From Basidiobolus meristosporus CBS 931.73 (taxonomy: Eukaryota > Fungi > Basidiobolomycota), in assembly GCA_002104905.1 (NCBI GenBank), contig MCFE01000452.1:1-64000 (forward strand): a stretch of 64,000 nucleotides of DNA, read 5' to 3'. The notes under the pieces are model-generated. The model was not told the origin of the DNA and did not search any database. It saw nothing but the letters and a program-made list of their open reading frames with translations. The position numbers and the translations under genes are program-made. Below, piece after piece: positions 2,999-64,000 of the stretch (its first letter is position 1; the number at the start of each line of letters is the position of its first letter).

Positions 2999-3347
2999 TG
3001 TTGTAAGAGTCTTGGAGATATTGGAAGTGATTGGGAGAACAAGTAGATTATGTGGTTTTCACTTAATGATTTATTGAATGTAAAAGTGGTATTTATACTT
3101 TTACCTGGTCTTGGCATTACAAACACGTAGAATAGGTTAAGAAAGGTCCCAAGAACATGTGTGCAAAGTTTGGGGCTGTTTGGACAACTTTGAGAATTTT
3201 CATGTTCTGGGTACCTGGTATTTTGGTGAAAATATTCTAAGTAAATCCCAACAAGGAATTTGGTCAGTATTCTCTAGGATTTGAAGGTGATGATCTAAGT
3301 GACTAAGTTAGGTGAATATTTAGGTGGAAATACAAATTTTTACAACA
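2999..3347. repeat. Solo LTR of Copia-A (349 bp), 5-bp TSD GGAAA
   Basis: TGTTGTAA...TTACAACA ends. GGAAA at 2994-2998 and 3348-3352. Close match to LTR 12503-12851. Confidence 0.95.
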
Positions 3348-14382: not shown

Positions 14383-17323
14383 ATGGCAGGTTATCATTGA
14401 ATCTTACATTCATGTAGGCGCAATGTCTCAAATATAAGACTGTCTTAAGTCTACATGAGAATTGACCTAAAAGTGATATAATAGCATTATGTTGTTGAAG
14501 GTCAAACTGTTTGCCCCATGGACAAGACTACTTTGACTCAACACTGTAAGAGAAGAGAAAAAAGACCATGTGGCTATTTTCACAAGCCTCTCAGCCATAA
14601 TGCATGCAGACAGCATAGGAAGTATTACAAGGATCATGGCCAGTGTTTTGCCACCCAAGTCATATTTGACCATTCATTGGTCACTATTGTACCAACATTA
14701 TCTTGCCGGCCAGTTAATACTTCAATATTGGCACCTGGCCATCTTTGTCACCTTGTGCAAATTGAGTCAGGTGAGCTTGTGATGCCTTTAGGCTCACCTC
14801 AGCCTTCTGAATATGGCATGCAGAGTGATAGCTCTGACAAAGAAGGTTCACCAATGGATTTTTGAGCCTATCTCCCCTAACAACAGTACCATGTATGAGC
14901 CCAGTTAAATCCCTATATGCAATGAGACAAAACCCATTGAAACAAATGGCAAGGATATTTTATGGAGCCAAGTGAGCCCAGTAATCCATTTACTGGTGAA
15001 TGATGTAATGTTGTTGCTAGAAAAGTGGTGTGTTTCCACTGGTATCAGTAATGGGGGCTTTGAGGATTTATTACTACTTCTTGCCAAAATCATACCAGGA
15101 TGCAACTTACCATATACATGGTACAAGTGGACAACCATCAAGCAGCTGGCTACATATGATCCAGAGACTGTCCTGATTGCAGCAAGTGTTAACAGTTGCA
15201 TGGCATTCACATCCAAAAGTGCTACCATTGCAACATGTCCAAATTGTCAGGAATCCACCTCCATTGAGGGAAAACATTGTTCACACTATGTATATATTCC
15301 GGTCATACCCCATCTGAGGAAGCTGATGCAGTCCAACAAATATTGCAAAGCTGTACAGTACTGCACTCAGTATAAAGTAAGCGCAAACATATCCAATATA
15401 TTTGATGGCAAACATTACAAACAGCTAAGAAGCAAGGGCTACTTTGAAGGTATGTATGACCATGCCTTTGCTTTAGTACTTGATGGATTCTCATTAAACA
15501 AGTACTCTACCAGCAAATCCTGCAGGCCACTGATTCTCATCTATCTGAATTGGCCGCCCGTCTTACGGTATCAGAACAATAATCTGATGGTAGTCTCACT
15601 GGTATCTGGGCCTAGATCACTGTCCAACCTGGATAGCTATCTGTATCCATTGCTGGATAAATTTTGAATGCTTTCCAGCAGGATATTGGTAAATGGCCAT
15701 CATGTAGAAGCACATATTATCATCTGCATTAGAGATACCCCAGCCATCAGCAAGATGGCAGGTTTTTCTGGGCACAATGGATGGTATTGCTGTCAAATGT
15801 GTGAGATCCAGGGTATTTACTCCATAACTCACACACATTATTATTACCCAGACACCGGCACTAAGAACATCATCTTTCCACAGGGAGAACATACAGAAGT
15901 AAGCAATCAATTGCAGCAAAGTTGGCAAGCTATAAGCCATTGGCTGGAATATGGAATCAATTGAAAACCGGAGATACTTAAGATAGACGGTATCTGTTGG
16001 AGCAAAAACTTTCCACTGGGAGCAATCCATTTGCTTTTCAACAATATCCCTATACTGATGACCAAGTTGTATATGGGGCATTTCAAGCTAAATGAGCCCT
16101 TCAAGATACCGGAGAAATTTGAAAGAATTGGCAAGATATTACAGAGTATCCGCTACCCTAAGTACTTCTCACAGGCTCCAATCAACATTCATATGCATAT
16201 GCAACAATGCAAATGCAAAGACTGGATGAACTGATATGTATTTATTCAAGTGGTGTTCTGAAGCCATTCCTACCAAGAGTACATTGAAAGCATTGGGAGT
16301 CATATGTGAAGAATGTAGGAATATTTATCCCAAAGCGGACCACCAATGCCAATTTGACGCATCTACAGCTGTTGTGTGAGGAGTTTGTGACAGGATTTGA
16401 GCGGCAATACTACAAACATAAAGCTGAATGTGTAGATCTCTGCCACTACTGTATCCATTCTCTACTCCATCTTGCACAGCGTGTGGAGAGTATTGGGCCT
16501 TGCTTCACCTTTTGGGAGTTTTTTATGGAGGAGGTGTGTGGGAAGATAGGAAGACAAGTCAAGTTGCAGGTACTACCATATCCCAATCTCATCAAGAATA
16601 ATACCTTCAAGTCTGTCATGGATGTGATGAGTTGGCACATGGAGTACAGCCTGAAAGAGTTGGAAAATACTGAAGACAAATGTGCATGCGGAGAGACCTA
16701 TGCCTATAGCATTAAGAAGCTAAGCAGCCCCAATGCATGGGTAATCAGTTAAGTAATGCAAAGTTGGGTTGGGTGCAACAAGCCACTAATTTTTATCAGG
16801 AAAACTCCACCAAGATATGCTGGATTTCTTGTGGTCACAAGCCAACTTCTACACCATTCAATACATGATTCACACAAACAAAAGCCAGAGCACACCTATA
16901 AGGGGGACTAGAAGCCAGCAGGGAGAAGGAATATATTGGCTAAATACTACAAAGTTCTTTGTCAATATTCAGGAGGTATTCATGGCAGAAGTGGCAACAA
17001 CCAAGCATATGTTTGCAAGATGTATATGCTACCTGCAGTACAAGGTATATGGCAACTTTGCAAGTATCACACTGAAAGCCACAAAGTTGAGGTAATAGAA
17101 GTATGTCAATTGAGGCAGGTGTGCACGTTTGTAGAGGTTACTAAGCAGGGGGCCATAGTCTTTTTTGATTCAAACTATATGTGGAATACCCAAGGTAGCA
17201 GTGGGTAAGCAAATAAAGAGGGGTGATTCTACAGTGGAATATATGAGTTGCACAAGGGGAGGTAGAATAAGGAAATGCCATTTGGTAAATTGGTACGGTA
17301 GCATTATACAGAACCAGCGGTAG
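14383..17323 (+). pseudogene. CACTA/En-Spm (CMC) family transposase, multiple stops
   Basis: CPNC, IFDGKHY, LDGF, LNWPPVLRY, SGP, DTPAISKMAGFSGHNGWYCCQMC, HSLLHLA and GPCFTFWEFFMEEVCG motifs typical of Tnp2/TnpD-like transposases. Start codon is uncertain. Confidence 0.88.
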
Positions 17324-42016: not shown

Positions 42017-45000
42017 TGTTGCAATTTAAGAAGTGATTTGGATATAAGGAACTTATCAAGAAATAGTGATAATAGTTGAACTGTTGTTTATTCATAAAGA
42101 AGCTCAGTATTTATACCTTTGTAGAAGTAATACAGCTGCAACACTAAGTAGGGAGGGTTTCTCAATACTCAGGAGCATTCTGTAACAGTTTCAGGGTTAG
42201 TACACAATGTTTGGTAATAGTGCTAATTTGATCCTGACTATAGGGGAATAATCATAAGATCATATATCTAGAGAAAGTGGCAAAGTTAAGGCAGTAAATG
42301 AGTCCTACAGTGACTAAGACTAGCCTAGAATTGTTAAGTAAATTTTCAGCTGCCAAATGATACCAAATAGTCCAATATTTCAACACTCCCCCTCAACTAA
42401 ATAATTTCTTAATCCCAATTTCTCTCTAAGGATCTCAAACTGTGGCCTAGCTAGTGGTTTTGTCAATATGTCTGCCACCATTTTGTCAGTTGGGCAGTAA
42501 ACCAGCTCTACTAAGTTATTTTCTACAGCTTCCTTCACAAAGTGATGCTGTATATCAATGTGCTTAGTTCTGGCATGATTAGTAGGATTTCTAGCTAATG
42601 AAACACAACTTTGATTATCCTTGTAAATACATGTTGGTTCACCTGAATTAAAACCTAAGTCTTTGAATAATTTTCGTAGCCATATAGCCTCCTTAGTTGC
42701 TTGACATGCAGCCATATATTCGGCTTCAGTTGTAGATAGTGCCACAGTTGGTTGTTTCTTGCAATTCCAAGTAATAGCTGCACCAGCATAAAGAAATACA
42801 TAGCCTGTGGTAGAGCGTCTGTCAATCAAATCCCTACCCCAATCTGAATCACTATAACCATCAAATTTTTGCCTATTAGCTGCTCCAGAGTATTCCAGTA
42901 CCATATTTATTGTACCTTGTAGATATCTGAAAATCTGCTTAACTGCTGCAATTTGATCTGATCCATAATTCTGCATAAATTGACTGACTATTCCAACTGC
43001 TACTGCAATATCTGGACGTGTAGACACCATCAAGTACATTAGGCTACCAACCATTGATTGATAGGGAAAGTTTTGGTCCATATTTGAGCCGTTTTCATCT
43101 ATAACTGGCTGAGATTTGCTTAATCTCAGGTTATTGTCCATAGGGGTTGCTGCAGGCTTGCAATTTTCCATTTTGAAGCATCTAAGAATGTCCCTGATGT
43201 ACTTAGACTGATTCAGCACAATTTTCTGCGTAGGTATGTCAAATTTGACCTGAATTCCAAGAAAATAGCTCAATTTTCCAAGATCTTTCATCTCAAACTT
43301 GCTGAAGAGATCTGATTTCGTCTGTTTAAGTGCCTCTTGATCACTTGTAGCTATAATTAGGTCGTCCACATAAAGAACTAGGATAATCACACCCTTTTTG
43401 AGCTGTTTCACATATATACTGTGATCTGCAGTGCTACGAGAGAACCCAATTTCCTCTAGATATGTGTCAATCTTGTTATACCATGCTCTGGGTGCCTGCT
43501 TAAGCCCATACAACAATTTTCTAAGTTTGCACACCTTATGGGGGCTTTTTGGATCGGTAAAACCTTCTGGTTGCTCCATATATATAGTTTCTTGCAAATC
43601 CCCATTTAGAAAGGCTTCTTTGACGTCCATTTGGTGTAGATCTAGACTGTGTACAGCTGCCAGGGCTAGAACTGTCCTAATAGAGTTAAACTTGGCAACC
43701 GGAGCAAATGTTTCCTTAAAGTCTAGTCCCTGGATCTGGGAATAGCCTTTAGCTACCAATCTAGCCTTGTACTTATCAACGGCACCATTTGAGGTTATCT
43801 TGATCTTGTAGACCCATCTACATCCTATTGGCTTTCTCCCATTTGGTAAATCTACCAGTTCCCATGTTTTTGCCTTGATCAGTGATTGGTACTCCTCCTG
43901 CATGGCTTGTTGCCACTTAGTAGCATCTGGACCTTGCATTGCCTGTTCCAGATTCTGAGGTTTGGCACATAAGGCAAGATAAGCTTCTTCATGATCATTG
44001 GATGTCTGCCACCAGGATCCAGGGGCATTTCTTATTCTGGTAGATCACCTAACTGGGATAATCTGTTCTGATCTGGAACTGGTAGAAGTATCTTCCATCT
44101 CTGGCTGGATTTGGTACGTATCTTCCTCATTTGTGTTGATTGCATCATCAGGCAGCTGGCCAATGATTTCTGTGGCTTTCTGATCTGAATTCTCCTCAAA
44201 TACAACATCCCTGCTCTTGATCAGCTTCTGAATTTTGCCATCATACACTCTATACCCTTTAGTATCTTCACAATACCCAAGAAAGATCCCTTTTCTACTC
44301 TTTGGTTCCAACTTTGAGCGTTTTTTGTCAGGGATGTGATAAAAAACATCACTGCCAAAGATCCTGAGGTGCTGGAGATCTGGTTTTTTGCCTGTATATG
44401 CTTCAAAGGGTGTAGAATCACGTAGTGCTGTTGTTGGGCATCTGTTCTTGATGTATACAGCGGTAGCAACAGATTCAGCCCAAAACTTGTAGTCCATTCC
44501 CTTATCATGTAGCATAGATCTTCCCATCTCTACTATTGTTCTATTTGCACGTTCTGCTACTCCATTTTGCTGTGGAGTATGAGGAACTGTGGTCTGTTGA
44601 AGTATACCAGTAGACAAGCAGTATTTTGCAAACTCCTTTGAGCAGTATTCTCCTCCATTGTCACTTTGTAGTACCTTCAATTTACACCCAGTTTGTGTTT
44701 CTGCCATGTTCTTGAAGTGCTTAAACGTCTCTAAAGCTTCATCCTTTGTTTTGAGGAAGTACACCCATGTATATCTTGTCTTGTCATCAATAAACGTCAT
44801 AAAGTATCTCTTGGCTCCAAAGGACAGTGTTCTCATGGGGCCACATATGTCTGAGTGTACAATAGCCAATATTTTGGTAGTATTGATGCCTTCTGAGCTC
44901 TTGAAACGTTGCCTAGCTTGTTTGCCATATGAACATCCCTTACAAACATTCAATCTGATCGGAATTGAGTATTTTAGGCCCAAAACAAGCTGATTTTTCA

Positions 45001-46703
45001 CCAATTGGCTCATTTTCTGTTCCCCTATGTGTCCTAGCCTCCTATGCCACGTCTCCCAGTTGGTTTCATCAGTTTCAGCAATGTTGACATACTCAGGTAC
45101 AATGATCTTGCATTGTAACTTGTATATATTGTGATCTCTGATTCCCAAAGCTAATTTGTGTCCATTTTCACTCAATATTGAGCAGCTCAGCTTAGTAAAA
45201 ACAAATTTCAGTCCCTGAGTAGTTGCTTTACTGACTGAGAGTAGGTTCTTAGCTATTCCAGGTACATAGAGTACGTCAGTCAGTTTTGCTGTTGTTGCCC
45301 CTGAGTTATCACTCATATTTAGTTGTATAGACCCACTAGCGGTAGCTTCCAATGCAGAGTTATCTCCCAGATAAACCTTTCTTACGGGAATAGTCTTTAA
45401 GTTGCTGAACCAATCCTTTATACCACAAATATGCTGTGATGCTCCAGAGTCAATATACCATTCATTACTTTGGTTACTTGCACTCTCTTGTACAGTGACA
45501 AATAACTGTTCATCAGTAGTTATATGGTTTGCCTGCTCTAGTTTCTGTTTTTCATCTGCTTGTTTCTTCTTGCATTCTCTTGCCCAGTGTCCTGGCTTCT
45601 TACAGTAGTTACAGCAGCCAGGTTTTCTTCGGTTTTGTTGCTTTCCCTTCTTTTCTGTATGCCTTTCTGAACTGAATAAAGCATTATCTTCAATTTTCTC
45701 TGCTTGATCATTACGTCTGAGTTCTTCATGGAGAAGTCTTCCTTTGACATAGTCTAAAGTCAAGTTGTCTTCTCTGCTTTCAAAAGAAAGTATGAGTGGC
45801 TCATACTCATCTGGTAGGCTGCAAAGCAGACAGAGTATCTTTTCTTCATCATCTACACCAGCATTAATACTGTAAAGTTCTTCTGCAAGTGTCTCCATTC
45901 TGGTAATGAGTTGTAGCACGTCATCATCTGGCTTTTTTCTCATGTTGAAGAACATTTCGTTTCAAATAAAGCTTGCTTGATACTGACTTTGCTCTAAAGA
46001 TCTTCTCTAAGGATTCCCATGCTGCTTTGGCAGTATTTGAGGCATGGATTTGTCCAATGAAGGAGTCTTGCACATTGATGCATATTGCATTGAAGGCCTT
46101 TCTCTCCTTCTCTTGAAACTTCTCCACATCTTCTGCTGTTCCTTTGGGCTCAACTTCCTTTCCTGTTACTATGTTCCAAAGCTTTCTTTCCTCAAGGTGG
46201 ATCTGCATCTTGATTCTCCAAAGTCTGTAGTTCTTCCCATCAAACCTCTCCTTTACAGGGAAGATGTTGGTATTGCTTTGTTTGCTGGTAGAAGTCATCT
46301 TTAGAATAGATTAAGGCAATCGGGGCTCATAACCTGTTGCAATTTAAGAAGTGATTTGGATATAAGGAACTTATCAAGAAATAGTGATAATAGTTGAACT
46401 GTTGTTTATTCATAAAGAAGCTCAGTATTTATACCTTTGTAGAAGTAATACAGCTGCAACACTAAGTAGGGAGGGTTTCTCAATATTCAGGAGCATTCTG
46501 TAACAGTTTCAGGGTTAGTACATAATGTTTGGTAATAGTGCTAATTTGATCCTGACTATAGGGGAATAATCATAAGATCATATATCTAGAGAAAGTGGCA
46601 AAGTTAAGGCAGTAAATGAGTCCTACAGTGACTAAGACTAGCCTAGAATTGTTAAGTAAATTTTTAGCTGCTGAATGATACCAAATAGTCCAATATTTCA
46701 ACA
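42017..46703 (-). mobile_element. Full-length young Ty1/Copia element (Copia-B, 4687 bp), 5-bp TSD GAACA
   Basis: 369-bp LTRs 42017-42385 and 46335-46703 differing at 5 positions by my count. GAACA on both sides. PBS and polypurine tract present. Confidence 0.97.
42380..46298 (-). pseudogene. gag-pol: Copia gag-pol, one frameshift (~45955) and one premature TGA (44045)
   Basis: ORFs 45924..46298, 44045..45955 and 42380..43939. CCHC knuckle, IDSGAS protease, GAG-pre-integrase WHRRLGH, DDE core, YVDD, RNase H. Confidence 0.95.
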
Positions 46704-49700
46704 GAACATCTATGTGCTTAGTTCTGGCATGATTAGTAGAACTACTGCTAATGAAAAACAATACTGATTATCTTTGTAAATACATGCTGGTTTATCTGAG
46801 TCAAAGCCTGAGTCTTGGAACAATTTCCATATCCATATAGCCTCCTTAGTTGCTTGGAAAGCATCCATATATTCAGCTTCAGTTGTAGATAGGGCCACAG
46901 TTGGTTGTTTGTTGCAATTCCAGGTAATAGCTGCACCAGCATAAAGAAATACATACCCATTGGTAGAGTATCTGTCAGTTAGATCTCTACCCAATCTTCA
47001 TCACTATAACCATCATATTCTTGCCTTTTAGCTGCTCCAGAGTATTCTAGTACCATTCTTATGGTACCTTGTAGATTTCTGAAAATCTGCTTAACTGCTA
47101 AAATTTGATCTGATCCATAATTCTGCATGTATTGAATGACTTTTCCAACTGCCACTGCAATATCAGGACTTGTAGACACCATGAAGTACATCAGGTTACC
47201 AACTATTGATTGATAGAGAAAGTTTTGGTTCATAATTGAGCTGTTTTCACCTAAAACTGGCTGAGATTTGCTCAATTGTAGATTATTTTCCATGGGGGGA
47301 GCTACAGGCTTGCAATTTTCCATTTTGAAGCATCTAACAATGTCACTGATGTACTAAGACTGATTCAGCACAATTCTTTATGTAAGTATGTCAAAATTCA
47401 CTTCAATTCCAAGAAAATAGTCCAATTTTCTAAGATCTTTCATCTCAAACTTGCTTGAGAGATCTGATATTGTCTGTTTAAGTGCCTTCTGGTCACTAAT
47501 AGCTAATATTAGGTTGTTCACATAAAGATCTAGAATGTTCACGCCCTTTTTGAGCTCTTTCACATATTTACTGTGATCTGCGGTGCTACAAATGAGCCCA
47601 ATCTCCACAAAGTTTGTGTCAATCTTGTTATACAATACTCTAGGTGCCTGTGTAAGCCCAAATAGCAGTTACCTGAGTCTGCACACCTTATGGGGACCTT
47701 TTGGATAGATAAAGCCTTTTCATTGCGCTGTATACATTGTTTCTTGCAAATCCCCATTTAGAAAGGCTGTTTTGATGTCCACTTGGTGTAGATCTGGACT
47801 GTGTACAGCTGCTAGGGCAAGAACTGTCCTAATGGAGTAAAACTTGGCAACCAGAGCAAATGTTTCCTTCAAGTCTAGTCCCTGGATCTGGGAATAGCCT
47901 TTAGCCACCAGTCTAGCCTTGTATTATTGACAGTATCATTGGAGGTTATCTTGATCTTGTAGACCCATCTACATCCTACTAGCTTTTTCCCATTTGGTAA
48001 GTTTATAAGTTCCCAAGTTTCTGCTGTGATCAGTGATTGGTACCCCTCCTGCATGGCTTGTTGCCACACGGTAGCATCTTGACTTTGCATTGCCTGTTCC
48101 TGACTCTGAGGTTTGGCACAAAAGGCAAGATAAGCTTCTTCATAATCATTGGATGGCTGCCACCAGGATCCAGGGGCATTTCTTATTCTGGTAGATCTCC
48201 TAACTGGCAAAATCAGCTCTGGCCTGGAGCTGGGAAATTTTCTTATCTATCTGACTGAATTTGGTATATATCTTTTTCATTAGTGTTGATTGCATCACCA
48301 GGCAGCTGACCAATGATTTTTGCGGTTTTCTGGTCTGAATTCTCCTCAAATGCAACATCCCTGCTCTTGATTAGCTTCTGAACTCCGCTATCATACACTC
48401 TATACCCATTAGTGTTGTCACAATTTCCAAGAAATATCTCTTTTCTACTCTTTGGCTCTAGCTTTGAGCAGTTTTTGTCATGAATATGATAAATGACACC
48501 ACTGCCAAAGATCCTGAGGTGCTGGAGGTCTGCTTTTTGCCTGTATATGCTTCAAAGGGTGTAATGTCATGTAGTGCTGTTGTTGGGCATCTATTCTTGA
48601 TGTATACTGTGGTTGCAATAGATTCAGCCTGAAACTTGTAGCCATTTCCTTGTTATGTAGCATAGATCTTCCCATCTCTACTATTGTTCTATTGGCATGT
48701 TCTGCTACCCCATTTTGCTGTGGAGTATGTGGAACAATGGTCTGTTGAAGTTTACCAGTAGATGAGCAGTATTTTGCAAACCCTTTTGAACAGGTTTCCC
48801 CCCCATCTTTGCTTCAGAGTATATTCAATTGATACCCAGTTTGTGTTTTGGCCATGTTCTTGAGGTGTTTGATTGTCTCTAAAGACTCATTCATTGTTTT
48901 GAGGAAGTATACCCATGTATATCTTGTCTGGTCATTAATAAAGTCATAAAGTTTCTCTTGGCTTCAAAGACCAGTGTACTCATGGGCCTGCAAATGTCTG
49001 AGTGTACAATAGCCTATATTTTGGTGTTGTTGATGTCTCCTGATCTCCTGAAATGTTACCTAGCTTGTTTGCCATGTGAAAATCCCTTACAGACACTGAA
49101 TATGATTGGAGTTGAGTAATTTAGGACTAAAACAAGCTGATTTTTCCCCAATTGGCTCACTTTCTGCTCCCCACTGTGTCCTAGCCTCCTATGTCATGTC
49201 CCCCCTTGGTTTCATCAGTTTCAGCAATGTTGGCATATTCAGGTACAATGATCTTGCATTGCAACTTGTATACACTGTGATCTCTGATTCCCAAAGCTAA
49301 TTTTTGTCCATTTTAACTCAATATTGAGCAGTACAGCTTAGTAAGAATAAATATCAGTCCCTGAGCCGTTGCTCTACTGACTTAAAGTAGGTTCTTAGCT
49401 ATTCCAGGTATGTAGAGTATGTCAGTTGGTTTTGCTGCAGTAGCTCCTGAGATATCACCCAAATGTAGCAGTATAGACCCACTAGTTGTAGCTTCCAGTT
49501 TAGAGTTGTCACTCAAATAAACCTTTTGTACACAAATAGTCTTTGAGTTGCTGAACCACTCTATTATACCACCAATATGCTGTGATGCTCCAGAGTCAAT
49601 ATACCATTCACTACTTTGGTTACTTGTACTCTGTTGTACAGTTACAAATATCTGTTCATCAGTAGTCATGTGGTTTGCCTGCTCCAGTTTCTGTTTTTTG

Positions 49701-51961
49701 TCTGCTTGTTTCTTCTTGCATTTTCTTGCCCAGTGCCATGGCTCCTTACAGTAGTTACAGCAACCAGGTTTTGTTTGGTTTTGTTGCTTTCCCTTCTTTT
49801 CTGTGTGCCTTTCTGTGTTGTATAGAGCATTGTCTTCAGTTTTCACTGCTTGATTATCACATCTGAGTTCTTCATGGAGAAGTCTTCCTTTGAAATAGTC
49901 TAAAGTCAAATTGTTGTCTGTGCTCTCAATAGAAAGTATGAGTGGCTCATACCTGTCTGGTAGGCTGCAAAGCAGACAGACCATCTTTTCTTATCCTCTA
50001 CACCAGCATTAATACTGTAATGCTCTATGCAAGTGTCTCCACTCTGGTAATGAGTTGTAGCATGTCATCATCTAGCTTCTTTCTCATGTTGAAGAGCTTT
50101 TGTTTTCAATTAAGCTTACTTGATACTGACTTTGCTTCAAAGATCTTCTCCAAGGACTCCCATGCTGCTTTAGCATTATTTGAAGCATGGCTTTGACCAA
50201 TGAAGGAATCTTAGACATTAATATATATAGCATAAAAGGCCTTTCTTTCCTTCTCTTGAAGCTTTGCCACTTCATCTGCTGTTTCTTTGGGCTCAACTTC
50301 TTTCCTGTTACTGTATTTCAAAGCTTTCTTTCCTCCAGTTGGATCAGCATCTTTATCCTCCAAAGTCCGTAGTTCTTCCCATCAAACCTCTCCTTTACAG
50401 GGAATATGTTTGTATTGTTCTGTTTGCTGGTAGAAGTTATCTTTAAAGTAGGTTAAGGCAGTCAAGGCTCATAGCCTGTTGCAACTTAAAAAGTGATTGT
50501 GATCCAAGGAACTTATCAAGACATAGTGATGATGGTTGAGCTTTTGTTTATTCATAAAGAGAATCAGTGTTTACACCTTTATAGAAGCAATACAACTATA
50601 ACACTCAGTAAGGAGGGTTTTGTAACATTCAGGAGCTTTCTGTAACAGTTGCAGGGTGGTATATAATGGTTGATAAAAAGTGTTATTCTGATCATCACTA
50701 TAGAGGAATAATTATAGGATCATAAATGTGAAGAAACTGACAAAGCTGGGGCCACATACTAGTCCTAGAGTGAACAAGACTAGTCCAGAATTGTTAAATA
50801 AATTTTTATCTGCTGAATGATGCTAAATAGTCCAATATTTCAACAGATAAAAGGATCTTATCAAGATATAGTGACAGTAGTTGAACTGTTGTTATTCATA
50901 AAGAACCTCAATATTTGTACCTTTGTAGAAGTAATATAAATGTTACACTCATTAGAGAGAGCTTCTCAACACTGAGGAGCTTTCTGTGACAGCTTCTGGG
51001 TTAGTAAATAGTGCTTTGTAAAAGTGCCAATTTGATCATGGCTATAGGGGAATATTCAAAGGATCATAAATCTGAAGAAAGTGGTAAAGTCAGGGCTGTA
51101 AGTTAGTTCTACAGTCACCAAGACTAAAGCTGGCTGCTATTAACTCAGTCTCAGTTTATTGTGCATGGGGATAGCTGCAGGCTTGCAATTTTCTGTCTTG
51201 AAGCATCTAAGAGTGTCCCTGATGTCCCTGGACTGATTCAGCACAATTTTACACATTGGTATGTCAAATTTGACTGTAATTCCAAGAAAATAGCTCTGTT
51301 TTCCAAGATCTTTCTTCTGAAACTTGCTGAAGAGATCTGATTTTGTGTGTTTAAGTGCCTCCTGGTCACTTGTAGCTATTATTAGGTCATCCACTTAAAG
51401 AACCTAGATCATGACACCCTTATTGGGCTGTTTTGGATATATTGTTATGATCTGCCGCTTGAATGTTTAAGTTAGATCAGTTTTTAGTCAAATCAGTTAG
51501 TATATGTTTAGGTTATCAATATATCAGTATTATTTATGAAATCAGCAGCATTAGTCAGCAAATGAATCAGCAGATCCTTTTCAGACAGAAATAGATATAC
51601 TAAGTAAGATCTTATTGGGTGATGATGATGCAATCAAATGAGTCATCAGCCACAACCTACACTAGGAAATACAATTAGTCAGCAATTGATCTGGCAAAAT
51701 GTATATAAGGAGCTGCTGGAACCTCAATAAAAATCAGTTCAAGTTTTAGTGAATACAATACTAGCTAAACTCCCTATTCCTCTACAACTCTTATACCAAG
51801 ACTTGTAACATTGGTAGCAGCAATAACCAGAAACATCCCTGCTGAAGAAAGAAGAAACCACCCTCAAGATGTTGGACAATCAAGAATGGAAGAATGCCAT
51901 GCAGTAAATCCTGGCCCAACAGCAACAGTTACTCCAGATCCTCAGCCAACAGCAACAAGGA

Positions 51962-52753
51962 ATGACAACCATGGCTCAGAGCCAGCAAAGCCCTGTCAAG
52001 AGCAACTTTGGTGTGAAGGTCAACCGGTACCATGGCAGAGTCAATGAAAACCTGGGAACTTGGCTCTTTCAGATTGAAGAAGCTTTTAAAGCTAAAGGAA
52101 TTGCTCCAGAGAGCAAGTTGCATTATGCAGCTTCTTACCTGGCAGATGCAGCCTTACAGTGGTACCACAACAAGATCAGGTCAGCCACTATGATGGGATG
52201 CTCTACAATCTCTACCTGGGATGAGTTTGTGTCGGAAATTCAGGGTGCTTTTGAACCTCCACACCAGCAGACACTACTAAGAAGGAAGTTAATGACACTC
52301 AGACGGAAAGGAATGGTTCAAGAATACATCTATGAGTACAGATGTCTACTTGGACAAGTTGAAAGAATGGACCCCTTGGATCAAGTTGAGTACTTTATTG
52401 ATGAGTTGAAAGAAAGTACTTGCAAGGAAGTGAATTACCAAAGACCTCAGACTATTGAAGAAGCCATCAAGATTGCCATTGACTATGACTCAGCTATGTT
52501 TGGAGTTGGGAAGCCTACAGTGACTAATCAGAAAGGCTACAATCATTATGAAAGAAGACAGTCAGAAGCAGTACCAATGGAAATAGACGCTATGCAGAAA
52601 AATCCTACCTCAGAAGAATGTAACAAGAAAGGACTTTGCTTCAATTGCCACCAGCAGGTACATATTGCAAAGTACTGCCCTCAGAGAAGAAATGGACACC
52701 AGCCAACAAGAACCTTCAACAATATTGAGTCCTATGAACACAGTAATGTGTAA
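51962..52753 (+). CDS. gag: Gypsy Gag (263 aa)
   Basis: Open 263-aa frame with a retrotransposon-gag-like region, VPMEID motif and CFNCHQQVHIAKYC zinc knuckle. Confidence 0.9.
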   Translation: MTTMAQSQQSPVKSNFGVKVNRYHGRVNENLGTWLFQIEEAFKAKGIAPESKLHYAASYLADAALQWYHNKIRSATMMGCSTISTWDEFVSEIQGAFEPPHQQTLLRRKLMTLRRKGMVQEYIYEYRCLLGQVERMDPLDQVEYFIDELKESTCKEVNYQRPQTIEEAIKIAIDYDSAMFGVGKPTVTNQKGYNHYERRQSEAVPMEIDAMQKNPTSEECNKKGLCFNCHQQVHIAKYCPQRRNGHQPTRTFNNIESYEHSNV

Positions 52754-55700
52754 GATGAGCTTGAAGAAGACTCAGAACTCACCTTCCACATGACACAAGA
52801 ATACCTATCCCAGATGACCTCAAACTCAGGAAAGCTATTATACTTGAATGGAGTAATCAATGGAGTACCTGCCAAGATCATGATTGACTCCAGAGCATCA
52901 CATGAGTACATGTCAGAGCAATTTGCTTTGAAAGCTGGGATCAACTTGGAACCTACCAAATCAACTTCAGTCTCCACAGCTGATGGGAACTCTCACATAA
53001 TCAACAGTATTACCCAGCCAGTAGGAATGAAGATCAATGACTATGAAGAAGACCTACAGGCTTTTATATTTGGGAACTGCAAGTTTGACCTTGTACTTGG
53101 AAAAACCTGGCTATTTTGTTGTAATCCATCAATCAACTGGAGAACCCATGCTACTCAGATCCAAAAAGACAACAAGACCAATGAGCTATTACCTGCTAGG
53201 CTGGATTTCAACTTGGTCAATTCTAGTGTGTGTGAGACAAGTGAACTTAGCAAGACCCGGTTCTGTAGAGCACTTAGAAAAGGTACTCAGATGTTCCTCA
53301 TGGTGGTTTTACAGGAGGATTCCTCTACCCCAGCACACCAGCAGGTCCAGACTCTCTTGAAGAAATATTCAGACGTGTTTCCAGATGAGCTTGTAAGCCT
53401 ACCACCAGTCAGAGATGTGGATCATGCCATTGACACAGGAGATAGCCCCCCAGTGAGCAAGACACCTTACAGAATGAGTCCATTGGAATTGGAGGAAATG
53501 AAGAGACAAATTGATCAGCTATTGGAGCAAGGATACATCAGGCGCAGCAAGTCACCCTGGGGAGCACCAGTGCTTTTTGTCAAAAAGAAGGATGGAACAC
53601 TTAGGATGTGCATTGACTACAGAGCCCTGAACTCAGTTACCATCAAGAATAAGTACCCCATACCTCAGATTGATGAGCTTTTGGACCAACTTAATGGAGC
53701 CACTATTTTCAGCAAGATTGACCTCATGTCAGGATACAACCAAATTAGGGTGAAACCAGAAGATATTCCTAAGACAGCATTTAGGACCAGATATGGACAT
53801 TACAAGTACTTAGTCATGAGTTTTGGCCTCACTAATGCCCCTGCAACATTCATGACGCTGATGCAGACTGTCTTTCAGGAGTACTTAGACAAGTTTGTGG
53901 TGATCTACCTGGATGACATATTGATATACAGCAAGACAGAAGAGGATCACGTAGTGCACATTGAAAAGGTCTTGGAGAAACTAAGAGAGAACAAGCTATA
54001 AGGCAAGCTAGCCAAGTGTGAATTCTTCAAGGAGCACGTTGAATACCTGGGACACATAGTGACTAGCACAGGAGTGACCTTAGACCCTAAGAAGGTTGAA
54101 GTTATGAAGAATTTGAAGCAGCCCAATAGCATATCAGAACTCAGATCCTTCCTTGGAATGGTTTCCTATTATCAGAGATTTGTCAAGTCTTTTGCAAGTA
54201 TTGCAGCTCCTTTAACTGATATCCTCAAGAAAGACAATGCCTACAAGTGGGACATAGCTTGTGAGACTGCCTTCCAGATGCTCAAGAATGAACTTGCTAA
54301 GCTGCCAAGCTTAAGAATACCAGACTTCAGAAAAGAGTTCACTCCGTGCACAGATGCTTCAGATTATGGAATTGGTGGAGTGCTGAGGCAAGAACACAAG
54401 GGAAAGGACTACCCTGTTGCCTTTGAGTCTAAGAAACTGAACTCAGCAGAACAAAACTATCCAGTCCATGAGAAGGAGATGCTTGCTATTATACACTGTT
54501 TGAAGACATGGAGATGCTATAATGAAGGAGTCAAATGCACTGTGAAGACTGATCATGCCTCCCTCCAGTATGTATTTACTCAGAAGGTACTCTCTAGAAG
54601 AATGACAAGATGGAGTGAATACATTCAGCAATTTGACCTGGAGATTGTCTACTGCCCTGGAAAAAACAACACGGTCGCTGATGCCTTATCAAGATTAGAT
54701 CAAGTTGCACAACTCAACTTGGTGCATGAATCAGATTGGCCAAGCCTATTACCAAAGTACTTGGAGGACCAAGCCATTCCTAATGAGGTGGATGAAGAGA
54801 TAAAGAAGATAATCCGGGTTGAAGCTAGCAAATTTGTTGTACAGGATGAAACACTCTACCAAATTGTTGATGGAAGCCCTATTGCCTATTGTCCTTATGT
54901 TGCTTGCCTGGATTTAATACATAAGCTACACAATGGATATGGACATCTTGGGATTGAAGGAACCTATAGCCTTGTGAAAGCCAGAGCATGGTGGCCCAGA
55001 ATGAAACAAAATATTGAGAAGCTAGTGAAAACATGCCCAAACTGCCAAATCAATCAAGGCCAACCACAAAGAATTGCCAAACTCTTCCCTTTGGAGCCTG
55101 TAAGACCATTTGAGAGATGGGGAATTGACTTTATTGGAAGACTGCCAACTACCAGGAAATGCAACCTTTGGATCCTAGTAGCAATTTACCATGCCACTAA
55201 ATGGCCAGTTGCTAAAGCTGTACCAATAGCCAGTGAACAAGAAGTTGCAAGTTTCATTTACTATGTGATCCTGATGAATTTTGGATGCCCTGTGGAGATC
55301 TTATCTGATAGAGGAGCAAACTTTCTGGCAAAGACATTAGAGGCTTACCTGGAAATGCAGCAGATCAGACACCTGAAAACCTTGGTATATCACCCCAGAA
55401 CTAATGAAGTCACTGAGTGGTTTAATGGATTATCTGGAAAAATGCTGACCAAGTATGCAAATGGAGTTGTCAGTAGATGGGATGAGTATATAGACCAAGC
55501 ACTCTTTGCATGCAGAGTCAGAGTACACAACACCACCCAGCAATCACCATTTTACTTAGTATATGGATGAGAACCAAGGATTCCAGGAGATCTCACACAA
55601 CCAAAGCTTACAGACACCTTTGAAGATGAACTCAGTCAGCCAAGTAGACACCAGCAACTGGAACAAAGACGTCAAGAGGCACAGACCAAAGTATCTCAAA

Positions 55701-56002: not shown

Positions 56003-56918
56003 TGGGGGAGAATGTTATGATCTGCAGCTTGAATGTTTAAGTTAGATCAGTTTTTAGTCAAATCAATTAGTATATTTTTAGGTTATCAGTATATCAGTAT
56101 TATCTATGGAATCAGTAGCATTAGTCAGCAAATGAATCAGCAGATCCTTATCAGACAGAAATAGATATTTTAAGTAAGATCTTATTGGGTGATGATGATG
56201 CAATCAAATGAGTCATCAGCCACAACCTACACTAGGAAATACAATTAGTCAGAAATTGATCTGGCAAAATGTATATAAGGATCTGTTGGAACCTCAATAA
56301 AAATCAGTTCAAGTTTTAGTGAATACAATACTAGCTAAACTCCCTATTCCTCTACAACTCTTATACCAAGACTTGTAACAATATACTGTGATCTGCAGTG
56401 CAACAACTGAACCCAATCTCCCCCAAATATATGTTAATCTTATTATAACATGCTCTGGTGCTTGCTTAAGCCCATTCAATAACTTCTCAAGTGTGCACAC
56501 CTTATTGGAGCCTTTTGAATCAGTAAAACCCTCTGGTTGCTTCTTGTATATAGTTTGTTGCAAGTCCCCATTTAGAAAGGCTGTTCTGATATCCATTTGG
56601 TGTGGATCTAGACTGAGTAAAGCTGCTAGGGCTAGAACTGTCTTGATGGAGTTGAACTTGGCAGCCAGAGCAGATGTTTCCTTAAGGCCAAGTCCCTGGA
56701 TCTGGAAATAGCCTTTAGCCACAAATCTAGCCTTGTACTTATTGATGGTACCATTTGAGGTTATCTTGATCTGGTAGACCCCTCTACATCCTATTGGCTT
56801 TCTGCCATTTGATAAATCTACCAGTTCCCACATTTTGCCCTGATCAGTGATTGGTACTCCTCCTGAATGGCTTGTTGCCACATAGTAACATCTGAACTTT
56901 ACATTGTCTGTTTCAGAA

Positions 56919-58183: not shown

Positions 58184-58510
58184 TCAGTTATGCACAGCAT
58201 TGGGTAGAAAAGGCTTACATTTAACAGCAGGTATACCAAGCTGCATGCAACCCTTTGAAAAACTGGAGATATTTGAAATAAATGGCAAGATATTGCAGAG
58301 CTTGGGGACATTATACTGCAGTAATTTTACCAGTCTTTACAGGTATATTTGGGCAATATTTTGACACACTACTTGGAAAATATCCCTACTGTGCAAATGC
58401 CACTCTGGCATGGAGTCTTGAGCATGTGCTGGCCTTCTGACAGGATAACCTGAAATATTATTAAATTGCAGAATGACCATGAGTACAATCAGTAACTTTA
58501 GTTAGCACAT
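58184..58510 (-). pseudogene. Possible decayed gene for a small secreted protein
   Basis: Hand translation MC*LKLLIVLMVILQFNNISGYPVRR...IYL*RLVKLL...KC, 109 codons with two in-frame TAA. Confidence 0.4.
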
Positions 58511-58993
58511 GTAGTGTTTGTGGTATGCGAATCTTACAAAGCAATACATCAAGACATAACTAATTAATGTCCATTTGACAAGACATTGCATTCTTTCCCT
58601 AAAGCCAAATTCTGATTTGGGTACATGATTTGTAAAAATGTATCAGTCAGTACTTGATATCTATTGACTACAAATAGCATATCACAACCTTCAGTATAGT
58701 GTCAGCCAGAAGAAGGAAGAAAGTGAGCCCAGATATGAAGCAAGAATTCAAAGAGTGATATTTATTGGTTATATTACACATATTGATTGCCAAGGTTATT
58801 TTTTGGTCTTTTGTATGGATGACATCTCACCAAGATATTTAATCCAAGTAATTCACATATTTATTCTGGTTGCATGGCATTTTATCCTAATCTGAAAGGG
58901 TCGAGTAGACATTCACGTTTTCTGTACCTAGTCTGTCAGAAAGGTTCCTATCTTTGATGGAGTTAATATCACTTCCATGATGGCTTTAATGGA

Positions 58994-59284
58994 TCAGCAG
59001 TAGACATCGTTAGGGTTTCTCTTCAACCTGTCCAACAGTCTTCGTAGTCTTCTCCAGTCTTTGTCCACAATGTAGGCGGGAGCATCCGCTGGGCATTGCA
59101 GTTGTGTCTCGCATATAAAGATCACTTGTCCACGATTACAGAATGCAAGAATCCCATGTTGTCTGAAGATGATTCCTGGATAGTTTCTCGGTGTAAACGG
59201 ATGACGGCGTGAGGAATTCTCCTGCGCCCCCACGACAAAGAGCATGGCGATACAAGCAAGTAGTAATGTCAAGATATACTTCAT
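58994..59284 (-). CDS. Small secreted Cys-containing protein, PFTPxNYPGIIF family, paralog 1 (96 aa from MKYIL)
   Basis: Signal-peptide-like MKYILTLLLACIAMLFVVGA. Gap-free alignment with paralogs. Likely start is 59284 rather than the track's 59383. Confidence 0.85.
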   Translation of the reverse strand: MKYILTLLLACIAMLFVVGAQENSSRRHPFTPRNYPGIIFRQHGILAFCNRGQVIFICETQLQCPADAPAYIVDKDWRRLRRLLDRLKRNPNDVYC

Positions 59285-60727
59285 TTCAGAATAGAAATTG
59301 ATGGTTTTTGGAGCTCTTCTCAACGCGAGAGTATTTAAGGTTTTATGGTGAATCAGCTCCAGCGAATTGAGTATCCCAGCCACCGAGGAAATGAAACATG
59401 GCGTTCGTCTAACTCATTCACAAAAGGACGCCATGGGTCTTCTATCAAATCAGAAATGGTAGGGTGTGGTGTTCAAAAACCTTTGCAAGTTTAGACAGGT
59501 GGCGCACAGTAGAAGCATTAGCAGTCCACCACTGGCCCAAAATAATCGCTTATTTTCGTTGTAAAGAAGACAACCGGGATCTCCTGATCCTTCAATATTA
59601 TATTTAATAATCAGACAGTCGATTTTTGTCGAATAAGCGGCTTACCGTACTCTGATTGGACCCTTAAGAAAGAAGGCTTGCAAAATGCTAGGTCACCCAT
59701 GCACCAGCACTGAGCATGAACGAATGTGTAGATTGTGGCATCTTCTTGACTGTAGAAAAGAGGTTTAAAACAGGCCTGTAGACGAAGTCCTACCTATTTT
59801 GAACCTAAAATCCATTCCTAACTAGGTTACAATGGGAAGTTGCTGTGAGGTGGAATGAACCATGAGAGATATAAGCTTAAGTCGCGTTTCACTGAATCAT
59901 CCATGTATGATTCGCGCTGGAAGTTACCACCATCAATATACTTAACAAATGTATCAGATTCTAGTTATCGAGCCTCTTCAGGGGCGACAATTTGTAACCA
60001 TTTTGATAGAATATTTCCGGTCAAGTCATAGTATCCACAAATTTCGTTGTCTTACCTGGCTGCGCCGATATGAGCACATCGTCGATCACCGTTAGCAATG
60101 TCATCAATATGATTAGTTCAAGGCGTATTCGACTGCACTGAGCCTGGTAGGGTGAACTCCGTTCAAGTACGTGATTCTATGTTGCGCCATATATATGTAT
60201 GCTATTGGGGTTGATTTGGAATCATGATCTGTCAACAGCTGGTGTGGCCATGAGCGATGGCCACTAATTAGAGGTGCACACTTTGTTACTATAGAGCGCA
60301 TCATTTTTTACATCAGGATCAAACCGTGACTTACCCGTAGCAGAGAACTTTTGGTTTGTTGTGAAAGCACTGAAATAACCCGTCCTACCAAGCAGGAAAT
60401 ATTTGTAGGTACTGACAGGATTTTTGGTTATTTAGAAGTTTGACTGATAAGCCGCGTAAGCGAATGCACGGTCACGGAAAACAGCCACGTATTTGGAGCG
60501 AAAAAACCATTGAGGCCCGATACTGAATCCATTGATGGTATGACCTTAATGAATCTCTATTGGATTCAATAGGTTTATGGTGGTGAACTCCTACTTTATT
60601 TCTGTTGTGTTAAACATCATCCTTCAAATATGTTTCTTACATATTGGTATAACATAATAATATTGCTAAACACTCTGGTTAACCCTTCGTTTCCGCCATT
60701 CTCGCCTAACTTCTTATATCGGTCCAC

Positions 60728-61039
60728 TCAGCGTCTACATTTCCCCAGCTGCGGATTCTTCTTTATTTCGGCAAGTAGCTCCTCGATCTTGCTCCTGTCA
60801 TTCTCAAGGGTATAGCACCCTGCATCAGCTAGGCATTGGGCCGATGTCTCAACCAGGAAGATGATGTACCCGTTGTAACAGAGGGCATTTTTCCCGACCT
60901 CGTTGAAGATGATTCCCGGGTAGTTTTGCGGAGTAAACGGATTGCTGGAAGAGTCAGGGCACTTTGTAGAGTATGACTTAGCCTCTCCTACTGTAACTAT
61001 AGCAGCACAAGCAGCGATAAACGTCAGGATATACTTCAT
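60728..61039 (-). CDS. Small secreted protein, same family, paralog 2 (103 aa)
   Basis: Signal-peptide-like MKYILTFIAACAAIVTVGEA, then NPFTPQNYPGIIF. Confidence 0.88.
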   Translation of the reverse strand: MKYILTFIAACAAIVTVGEAKSYSTKCPDSSSNPFTPQNYPGIIFNEVGKNALCYNGYIIFLVETSAQCLADAGCYTLENDRSKIEELLAEIKKNPQLGKCRR

Positions 61040-61734
61040 TTTACAAAGTAATAGGACAGCGCTCTGCTCCTTTTATCGAACTTTTATGGTTTCCCCTTAT
61101 TATAGAGATTATTTACTACGACATAGCATCAAGTGGCTTCTCATTGAAAGTTGTAATGCACACCTCCCTGATACGAACCCCCGACTATTCGAGCGGTGAA
61201 TAAATTTCCCATGGCACTTTTCTCTCACCATTTATGCGGCATGTGCCCTTTTCCTGTCACTACGGGGATACCCCACCATGTACAATCTGTTTTGGCACTA
61301 TATACAACAGGTTTATTTAAGCCAACTCCTTCGACCTTATGGCTAGATTAATATATTAATAGATTCATATTATCCAGCCTATTCAATGTGCATGTCACAT
61401 TTCCGTAGTTTCTCTTGTTTCAACAACCATATATAGATCAGCGGTGCTGCATTATTATTATTATAAACCGGACACAACGGAGAAATATTTGAATCGTTCA
61501 ATTACAACTACTCTTTGTTTATTTTGATTAATATTTGGCCATTGTTTATTGAGATGATCTTTGTACAATTACCATATTTAGTCGAATTGCACCGAAACTT
61601 TATTTCTTGCGCCAATAAGGTTCTACCTTTAAAGATCACCCTTGGGTTTTCTCTCTGCACCACACCTGTTTGGAGTTTCACTTTAAACACATACCCACCA
61701 AGTCTTGCATATTTAGATGAACTCTCACAATTGC

Positions 61735-61810
61735 AGAACACATTGAAGCCATTCATCCAAAAGATAATTACCGGGTAGACTCTGGAGTGGGCGGATTACC
61801 TTCTGGATGA
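61735..61810 (-). pseudogene. Frameshifted fragment of the same family
   Basis: Reads NPPTPE/YPVIIFWMNGFNVFCN versus NPFTPKNYPGIIFRKDGFNVFCD in paralog 3. Confidence 0.7.
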
Positions 61811-62650
61811 TTAGCTCTCACGCTTTGACCAATGGACATCCCGGAAACCAACCTAGGGGCTAAATCGACGCCACCTAAAGCGATATGCTCTTACTTATCC
61901 TTGTACATTGAATATCAGAATGTATGCGAGTTAGTTGACAAAATTGGGGATCCTACAATGTCGCGCTTGATTTTCCATGGAATCTGAAGTACACCATTAC
62001 TACCCACGCTGTACCCCAAGCATACGCAAAACTTCAATTGCGGTCGTAAAGATGGGGCTGGCTTCTTCACGATAAAAATCTCCGGTCTAAAAATCCTTCA
62101 CATCCACTGAATGAACTATTTCGAAACACCTAGTCTATATATTCAGATGTATTTTGACTATTATGTGGAAGATTCCATGCTTTCGAAAGCACTAACCTCC
62201 GACAACGTGAGCATTCCTTTGCTGGGGCGAAGGAATGGATTTGATGGTTGATCACTGATCTCCAATGCTGTATATACTAGATTCTTAGAACCCCAAGGAA
62301 TTAAAACGGCGTTAGCCTTATAGATAATTAACTTTCACATTATAAGGAGAATTGGTAATTGATGGTCCCCTAGGTGGAAACCCAAAATAAGGCAGGAACC
62401 TACACCGCATAACTCGGTACTATTAGGTAATAGCACATTATCAGTAATCACAACGTTGGTTTCCCCCTTCCAGATTATCATAATTAGCTGGCAAACATAT
62501 CTTCGAGGACCAACTTCAATACACCGTTACATACTTCAGTGAGGTAAATACATGATCATTACTCAGTTTCCATCTTTGGTTGAACTTCGTCAGAACTTTA
62601 TTTCAGGAGGCAATAATATTTCTCCTACATAGGTCACTCGCGCATTTCCT

Positions 62651-62950
62651 CTACTTTCTGCACCACACCTGCTTGGGGTGTCGCTTCAACCTGGCCAACG
62701 CCCGTTCAAGATCCTTCCTGTTGAAGTCCAGAGTGTAGCTTGGGGCATCCGCGAGACACCTCAATGAAGTCTCGCATATGTAGGTGAGCACACCTCGATC
62801 GCAGAATACGTTGAAGCCATCCTTCCTGAAGATAATCCCTGGGTAGTTCTTTGGGGTGAATGGATTTCTGCGTGGAGAATCCGCTTTCGCCCCTTGGCCA
62901 AGGCACAGTACGGATATAAAGATAAGCGCTAGAGCGGAGATGTTCCTCAT
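62651..62950 (-). CDS. Small secreted protein, same family, paralog 3 (99 aa)
   Basis: Signal-peptide-like MRNISALALIFISVLCLGQGAKA, then RR-NPFTPKNYPGIIF and four Cys aligned with paralog 1. Confidence 0.88.
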   Translation of the reverse strand: MRNISALALIFISVLCLGQGAKADSPRRNPFTPKNYPGIIFRKDGFNVFCDRGVLTYICETSLRCLADAPSYTLDFNRKDLERALARLKRHPKQVWCRK

Positions 62951-63917
62951 ACTGGAAGGTGGAATGTTTGTCGAATGCTCGAAAGGCTGACCTTCTTTCT
63001 ATATTTATGTGATTCTCAATAGCCTCATGGTGATGTGTTGGCTGATCTATTTGCTGGTCAAGCATACATCGCCAAGGCAAATGAGAAGGGATTCGAGAGC
63101 TGAACTGGAAGGGTATAGCCTACAATTTAACGCCATCGTGAAGCGCTTAGTAATACCCGCTGAAAGACCTAGTCGTTAGTCATGCGCAGTTTAAGTTTTG
63201 GTGGATCCAATCAAAGAGCCTTTTAAGTGTGCCATCATCAGTGGGTGTAACTCAAACCCGATAATCATTTAAAACGGCGCACTAAGTCACATATTCTGAC
63301 CAATATAGTACACCTACTCCTACAGACCAACAGTTTCAAACCATTTCGCTTGCCATGTACTCATGTGGCGCCTGGGTTCCAATTAGGTAGCAAAGGTGTA
63401 CGCCTCCTTGGAAATTCAAGACCCATCATATGATGGGAAATCGAGGATCAGTAGAAATAGTGTATAGTTGTTGGCAATATCTCCACAAGTATTGCTACTC
63501 TTCGGGTCCAATGGAATAGATCCTACGAGTGGGAAATCGAAATTCTCGCTGCTTTGTCATTATTTTGCTTTATCTACCTCGGTTAGCCAATAGGTACTCA
63601 ACTGGGAGAACTTTCTGGCATCTGAACAAGCAGATGGGTTGTAAGGTCAGTCATGGACCCCTACCACTGTACGTATCATACTCCGGTGCGCACTATTCTA
63701 GAAAGCAGAAATGCCATTGGTCTATTCAGCATCTGTAGGTACGATCTATAGCCGATTTTATGAAATGTTGGAAATCCATCGAATGTGTTCTGTGGCTTTA
63801 TTTTTGACATTGTGAACAGCATTCGCAGGTATTGATTGCACATTGGTATTGTATAATAGTATTGCTACATGATCCTGTCAATCATTCATCTTCACCATTC
63901 TCATCTGCCTTGCTATA

Positions 63918-64000
63918 TCAGTCCACTGAGTGTCTACATTTTCCCAGCTGCGGATTCTTCTTTATTTCGGCAAGTAGCTCCTCGATCTTGCTCCTGTCAT
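63918..64000 (-). CDS. 3' end of paralog 4, nearly identical to paralog 2, runs off the window
   Basis: 63922-64000 nearly matches 60722-60800. C-terminus ...KKNPQLGKCRHSVD*. Confidence 0.75.
   Translation of the reverse strand, partial: DRSKIEELLAEIKKNPQLGKCRHSVD

Follow-up and report, generated by a model that had tools for sequence, protein, structure and literature searches.

The stretch of DNA analysed here, in the following called the window, comprises bases 1-64000 of contig MCFE01000452.1 (72,929 bp) of the Basidiobolus meristosporus assembly GCA_002104905.1, and its placement was confirmed by sequence. At its far end lies part of a tandem array of small genes, all on the minus strand, which encode proteins with a signal-like N-terminus and a shared domain. 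As an earlier, sequence-only reading of this DNA had described, open reading frame (ORF) listing and tblastn revealed three intact genes named A, B and C (96-103 amino acids), one pseudogene and a fourth gene, of which only the 3' end is included. The features of the array within the window are as follows.

58310..58993, no strand: distal flank of the array; the colinearity with a second contig stops at 58310, where a transposon block starts.

58994..59284, minus strand: gene A1, a short form of type A with 96 amino acids plus stop, read from the MKYIL start; signal-like N-terminus, RR before HPFTP and four domain cysteines.

59388..59403, minus strand: A1 copy of a conserved upstream element, reading CGAACGCCATGTTTCA with 2 mismatches to ACAACGCCATGTTTCA, some 105-120 bp upstream of the A1 ATG; an exact 12-mer lies at 59392-59403.

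60728..61039, minus strand: gene B1, a short form of type B with 103 amino acids plus stop, assigned to cluster P0002; the ancestral GC-Y cysteine is retained, and the linker contains one more cysteine.

61651..61863 (about), minus strand: pseudogene resembling type C, disrupted by in-frame stops, a frameshift and a deletion and decayed on both contigs.

62651..62950, minus strand: gene C1, a short form of type C with 99 amino acids plus stop, unannotated in the public record; this type was used for the structure model.

62999..63008, minus strand: TATA-like sequence ATAAATATAG, located some 50-58 bp before the C1 ATG.

63918..64000, minus strand: 3' end (last 27 codons) of gene B2, cut by the window edge; the whole gene occupies 63918-64238 of the contig, encodes 106 amino acids and is 88% identical to B1.

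The proteins A, B and C are 42-52% identical to each other. Because the tblastn E-values between the three types range from 1e-20 to 1e-29, their similarity is not due to chance. From [HN]PFTP to the last cysteine they align without gaps and share 29 invariant columns. The sequence pattern proposed earlier for the three proteins is thereby confirmed except for one position, since the second L of its LxxLK element is an I in type B. A longer ORF of 129 amino acids starting at a GTG was discarded for A1, as it is an upstream over-extension of the 96-amino-acid gene that starts with MKYIL. Over these 96 amino acids the A1 protein is identical to copy A2, which is annotated as K493DRAFT_295536 and belongs to cluster P0001; a look-up of the exact protein finds it on two contigs of the assembly. 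Copy A2 lies just beyond the window (contig positions 65819-66187; 6743-7111 of the fetched stretch L002); it has no stop after the last cysteine and thus gains 26 extra residues, which gives the annotated product of 122 amino acids.

The window holds only the proximal third of the array, which continues for 8.9 kb up to the end of the contig; no further family copies were found by tblastn in bases 1-58,000 of the window. At least nine copies are present on MCFE01000452.1, which in gene orientation follow the order A3 (frameshifted), B3 (premature stop), C2, A2, B2, C1, pseudogene, B1 and A1. The same array is found on a second contig, MCFE01000009.1 (265 kb), with 98.3% identity over 14.6 kb. 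There 11 copies were counted, including the additional types D and E, the latter with ATA instead of ATG, and an intact A3. The two contigs represent either haplotypes or a recent segmental duplicate, so that position 58310 would mark the edge of either a haplotype-specific transposon block or a segmental duplication. Past the end of colinearity MCFE01000009.1 runs into unrelated sequence (fetched stretch L001, 17864-20369), in which an ORF of 420 amino acids (L001 18608-19870, minus strand) has no Pfam match. Only three of the nine copies on MCFE01000452.1 are annotated, and A1, C1, C2, D and E are missing from the public annotation. How many copies the genome has, and whether short forms occur in Basidiobolus ranarum, was judged from annotated proteins and six fetched loci; even in B. 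meristosporus most of the short copies lack annotation.

Every copy consists of a single ORF without signs of introns. Each gene is preceded by a TATA-like box (ATAAAAGG, TAAAAGAG or ATAAATATAG) 35-60 bp before the ATG, and an AATAAA is located within 50-130 nucleotides after most of the stop codons. In all 16 full-length members checked a window of 10 residues with a mean Kyte-Doolittle hydropathy of 1.7-3.4 is present within the first 28 residues. Small residues at positions -3 and -1 were recognised by eye in the types of the window (VGA|Q, GEA|K and AKA|D). The N-termini therefore look signal-like by this heuristic, in agreement with the secreted nature assumed in the sequence-only reading. 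Between the signal-like stretch and the invariant motif there is a linker of 10-28 residues. It ends with RR in types A, A3 and C and with a single R or K in types D, E and several long forms, and it is free of basic residues in type B. Trimming by a Kex2-like protease may therefore occur.

The motif FTPxNYPG is invariant. From this motif onward the short forms, which are 96-106 amino acids long in total, comprise 69-71 amino acids (about 8 kDa) with four cysteines. The net charge of the mature proteins varies from -5 in type D over about 0 in types B and E up to +5 to +7 in types A, A3 and C. Among the proteins of the window, the mature part of A1 has about 8.2 kDa and an isoelectric point (pI) of 9.4, that of C1 has a pI of 9.6 and a charge of +7, and that of B1 is near neutral.

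As the claim of a restricted distribution rests on absence, an exhaustive search of 1.84 billion protein representatives was performed with a profile hidden Markov model (HMM). It retrieved seven true matches, which all come from Basidiobolus: the two clusters of the window, three other proteins of B. meristosporus and two of B. ranarum. Three matches from other organisms (P0008-P0010) were rejected as artefacts, because they are perfect tandem-repeat proteins that also match dozens of unrelated Pfam families. A word-index search with a widened profile gave 12 clusters, again from B. meristosporus and B. ranarum only. An hmmscan of 19 members against Pfam-A gave no match at E-values up to 10, and no description of the family was found in the literature on its locus tags and on small secreted proteins of Basidiobolus. 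According to these searches the family is restricted to Basidiobolus and has no known Pfam family. The earlier description of it as unassigned and lineage-specific is thus supported.

The other relatives are long forms of 113-190 amino acids as annotated, or about 130-145 amino acids when full-length. Compared with the short forms, they have a further stretch of about 30 residues (NGNEVWP...RIDPK...KDWPGKG...ATC), located after the helix and ahead of the last cysteine. In both species the long forms adjoin PhoD and COG4 genes and form small arrays with at least four copies each, at a syntenic locus that is not associated with transposable elements (TEs). These loci are situated on MCFE01000102.1 in B. 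meristosporus (L003) and on JASJQH010000311.1 in B. ranarum (L004), and some of their long forms are unannotated or truncated at the locus ends.

A maximum-likelihood tree was calculated for the shared 68-residue domain and rooted at the midpoint. All short forms are found on one side of a branch with a support of 94/88 and with this rooting are nested among the long forms, while types A, C, D and E constitute a clade with a support of 100/96. The tree resolves the short forms of the array as one derived clade of an older long-form family; the short forms lost the loop of about 30 amino acids before the last cysteine. Type B keeps the ancestral set of cysteines (aIC ... xC-x5-GC-Y ... C-terminus). 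In types A, C, D and E the GC-Y cysteine was lost and a cysteine in 'IC-ET' was gained. In both states the changed cysteine is placed five residues from the invariant middle cysteine, and we infer that a CX5C disulfide may have been relocated. Judging from the sequences, the copies multiplied by tandem duplication, which includes a B-C block of 1.77 kb that is duplicated at 90% identity. Four copies have decayed (the pseudogene, B3 and A3 on MCFE01000452.1, and E, which lacks the ATG), as expected from the birth-and-death evolution assumed in the sequence-only reading.

To that process gene conversion probably has to be added. The coding sequences (CDSs) of A1 and A2 are 99% identical (synonymous divergence, dS, 0.03-0.05) compared to 58-67% in the 300-bp flanks, and those of C1 and C2 are 98.7% identical compared to 71-82% in the flanks. 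Because the CDSs are far more alike than their flanks, the conversion tracts would be confined to the CDS.

The ratio of nonsynonymous to synonymous divergence (dN/dS) was determined pairwise by the method of Nei and Gojobori, both gene-wide and per region. Intact pairs gave values of 0.08-0.38, and only the comparison of B2 with the pseudogene B3 reached 0.68. Between types dS is saturated and dN is low, with a dN/dS of 0.1-0.2. The N-terminal motif is the most constrained region (0.03-0.13), and the helix and tail are the least constrained ones (0.15-0.8). These values suggest purifying selection on the family. No diversifying selection was seen gene-wide or by region, and no region has a dN/dS above 1. 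The highly variable positions noted earlier do not reflect diversifying selection, since dN/dS is 0.1-0.4 over the whole gene and stays under 1 region by region; given these low ratios they are better described as tolerated surface change than as demonstrated positive selection.

For the type C protein (C1) a model was calculated with AlphaFold2. Its mean predicted local distance difference test (pLDDT) value is 82.5; the block means are 88-97 for residues 31-99, and low values are confined to the signal region. The model consists of an extended N-terminal segment with PFTPxNYPG, strands at residues 40-43, 46-51 and 53-59, a one-turn helix (62-64), another strand (71-73) and a helix (78-90). 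The hydrophobic positions of the last helix (L/I at i, i+3/4 and i+7) are conserved, and its exposed positions change their charge among the paralogues. This pattern speaks for a helix that belongs to a globular domain and not for a free membrane-active peptide, and in the model the helix is predicted to pack on the sheet. Although the C-terminal segment had been described earlier as an often cationic helix, action as a free cationic peptide agrees neither with this prediction nor with the mature charges of -5 to +7. The four cysteines likely form two disulfides, one within the CX5C pair and one between strand 2 and the C-terminal cysteine.

Structure prediction combined with a Foldseek search, the check suggested in the sequence-only reading, thus yielded a confident model for type C and no matching fold. 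Foldseek gave no match with an E-value below 2 in the PDB and no match in BFVD. In the ESM Atlas the search by shape reached a template modelling (TM) score of 0.46 at most, and the search by features gave scores of 0.76-0.77, which is under the lead threshold. VIA-align, run widely and in a second look, gave nothing above noise, as best Z values of 7-8 are typical for unmatched models. Since the domain is small and the alignment shallow, the claim made here is that no known fold was found, and not that a new fold is proven. The fold search with a long form was also blank, which is uninformative because the model of the long form is poor.

Sequence searches of the PDB with one protein and with the family profile gave nothing credible apart from a motif look-alike in the TATA-binding protein (TBP). 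Positions 18-44 of the family profile match both repeats of the archaeal TBP 1mp9 (residues 30-56 and 121-147) via PENYPGLI, with a whole-sequence E-value of 0.0085. The stretch PENYPGLI resembles P-[DE]-Q-F-P-G-L-I, and the motif of the TBP repeats is P-E-x-F-P-G-L-I-[FY]-R. The GIIF part of the family motif begins a strand in the model, and the corresponding segment of TBP also leads into a strand. We nevertheless rejected a relationship with TBP, as the likeness is limited to about 10 residues, the E-values are 15-19 when each stretch is taken singly and TBP is absent from the structural matches. Furthermore TBP is a nuclear protein, while the family is predicted to be exported. The likeness is probably due to chance or to a convergent local loop-into-strand motif.

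With 0-3 mismatches, the 16-mer ACAACGCCATGTTTCA precedes nine family genes from two species at a distance of 77-124 bp from the ATG, and the surrounding sequences have diverged. The carriers are the short forms A1, A2, A3 and E and the long forms P0003 and P0011 of B. meristosporus, and three long forms of B. ranarum. Types B, C and D are devoid of the element. Further copies are located at these positions.

L001 (MCFE01000009.1), 2061-2076, 3255-3270, 9877-9892 and 16767-16782: copies of the element.

L003, about 85 bp upstream of 10001 and of 11220: copies of the element.

L004, 256-267, minus strand: copy of the element.

L005, 5713-5724: copy of the element.

In L001 four exact 12-mers were observed compared to 0.14 expected, and in background windows of 300 bp the best sequence usually has 6-7 mismatches to the 16-mer. 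An upstream 'CCATGTTTCAT' was considered as the start of an upstream ORF and rejected, since P0003 and P0011 carry CTG or TTG at this place and keep the rest of the element. The core of the element, TGTTTCA, is invariant and reads on the opposite strand as TGAAACA, which is the consensus sequence for pheromone response through Ste12 (PMC7017024). The 16-mer is a lead to a shared regulator, and its Ste12-type likeness was recognised after the fact.

Taken together, the array belongs to a real, selected and genus-restricted family of small proteins with predicted export, and its tandem short forms would probably act outside the cell on a conserved target. The proteins would be secreted, and a Kex2-like protease may cleave them immediately in front of [NH]PFTP. 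They would fold with two disulfides and bind a conserved target outside the cell via the invariant N-terminal face, and the main difference among the paralogues would be the charge on the outward face of the helix. With fewer than 300 amino acids, several cysteines, no known domain and a restricted taxonomic range, the proteins are putative members of the operational class of small secreted cysteine-containing proteins or effector candidates.

Basidiobolus is an early-diverging fungus, which inhabits the guts of amphibians and reptiles, has insects as carriers and causes occasional infections in humans. To our knowledge almost nothing is known of the proteins it exports toward its hosts and competitors. 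A role of the family toward other organisms that share the gut, dung or insect habitat, be it antimicrobial, defensive or effector-like, may be assumed with slightly less than even confidence. Such a role is in keeping with the habitat of the fungus, with the expansion of the array next to TEs and with the basic charge of some paralogues, whereas the acidic paralogues and the low dN/dS weigh against it. The family resembles the lineage-specific small secreted cysteine proteins from TE-rich regions of other fungi in its size of about 100 amino acids, the signal-like N-terminus, an even number of cysteines, the lack of a known domain, the restriction to one genus and the tandem duplicates and pseudogenes beside transposons. 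It differs from them in its host, which is an early-diverging fungus associated with gut, dung and insects and not a plant pathogen, in the purifying selection and the invariant motif of 10 residues, and in an ancestral locus among housekeeping genes.

Several points speak against an exported family which acts on a target outside the cell. The calls of signal peptides and cleavage sites are based on hydropathy and a (-3,-1) heuristic, and type B would have an odd number of cysteines if the linker were retained. The disulfide pairing was derived from spacing and secondary structure and not from model coordinates. The type C model is based on a shallow family alignment of 13 sequences, and the model of the long form reaches a pLDDT of only 52.8. 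The family proteins that were looked up occur only on genome contigs. Finally, the strong conservation of the motif, the low dN/dS and charges from -5 to +7 argue against a classical arms-race effector and also against a generic antimicrobial peptide of the cationic kind.

Somewhat less likely is a role in development, at the cell surface or in signalling. In the corresponding alternative explanation the fungus uses the proteins for its own purposes, as extracellular signals under developmental control or as surface components of spores or the cell wall, for example in the formation of zygospores or conidia under a Ste12-like mitogen-activated protein kinase (MAPK) pathway. We regard this as possible, with a probability well below one half. 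The strong conservation of the N-terminal motif in more than 20 paralogues from two species, the purifying selection throughout, the ancestral locus among housekeeping genes with its synteny between the species, and the Ste12 element in reverse complement within the upstream 16-mer are all in line with a self-directed function. However, the Ste12 match is a 7-mer noticed post hoc, the genes of types B, C and D do without the element, and the sequences give no hint of wall anchoring such as a glycosylphosphatidylinositol (GPI) signal or repeats. A more far-reaching version, in which a new fold serves as extracellular signals or recognition factors that are switched on via the Ste12-type pheromone/MAPK element (TGAAACA within the 16-mer), appears rather improbable. 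If true, a zygomycete-grade fungus would possess a protein-based system for signalling or associated with mating, with the short-form array beside the TEs as a recently amplified offshoot. We know of no such system described in zygomycete-grade fungi.

Slightly more doubtful still is the assumption that the family belongs, in strongly diverged form, to a known fungal effector or toxin superfamily, such as Hce2/Ecp2, cerato-platanin/RlpA-like double-psi beta-barrel (DPBB) or KP4/KP6, a relationship that sequence methods would fail to reveal. In its favour are the automatic UniRef names of two long forms, 'Ecp2 effector protein domain-containing' for P0003 and 'RlpA-like double-psi beta-barrel domain-containing' for P0004, and size, export signal and four cysteines would fit as well. 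The two names contradict each other, and both were rejected since neither the HMM nor the fold tests gave any support for them. Like the family, Hce2/Ecp2 (PF14856) is a secreted fungal domain of about 100 amino acids with four cysteines, but none of the 19 members matches this HMM or those of the other named families at E-values up to 10, and there is no structural support. Cerato-platanin and RlpA-like DPBB proteins share with the family that they are small secreted fungal proteins with two disulfides. In contrast, the predicted order of three strands, turn, strand and helix is not that of a six-stranded double-psi barrel, and no such chain was among the matches of the fold searches. KP4, KP6 and AFP/PAF are secreted, disulfide-stabilised small alpha/beta proteins, some of them Kex2-processed, which recalls the strongly basic types A and C. 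However, no match in fold or sequence was obtained, and the charge of the family is not conserved. None of these superfamily folds appeared among the VIA-align or Foldseek matches.

That the ORFs are nonfunctional and look conserved through recent duplication or as part of a repeated element is very improbable: despite the few annotated copies, the adjoining transposons and several broken genes, dN/dS is 0.1-0.2 between types with saturated dS, the reading frames stay open across types which are 40-50% identical, orthologous long forms occupy a syntenic locus away from TEs in a second species, the flanks diverge much faster than the CDS, and promoter-like and poly(A)-like signals are found at fixed distances.

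The array is of interest for two reasons. A shape that is predicted with confidence matched nothing in the searches of the PDB, BFVD and the ESM Atlas. In addition, it offers a compact evolutionary case, in which an ancestral cluster beside housekeeping genes would have given rise to a short form by deletion of a loop and relocation of a disulfide cysteine, followed by amplification beside TEs and gene conversion confined to the CDS. If an activity is found, the family would be a new class of fungal secreted proteins; otherwise it is one of many orphan secreted families.

The remainder of the window, from 1 to 58 kb, is filled with copia, Ty3/gypsy and tnp2-type transposon sequence, and the array therefore lies at a TE-rich edge as proposed before. 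A near-complete copia-type element with gag, integrase and reverse transcriptase is located at 42380-45955 on the minus strand. A Ty3/gypsy element with capsid, protease, reverse transcriptase, RNase H and integrase is found at 51962-55570 on the plus strand, and a fragment of a tnp2-type transposase at 14972-15667 on the same strand. More copia fragments are present at 8781-12243, 49382-49984 and 56309-56881.

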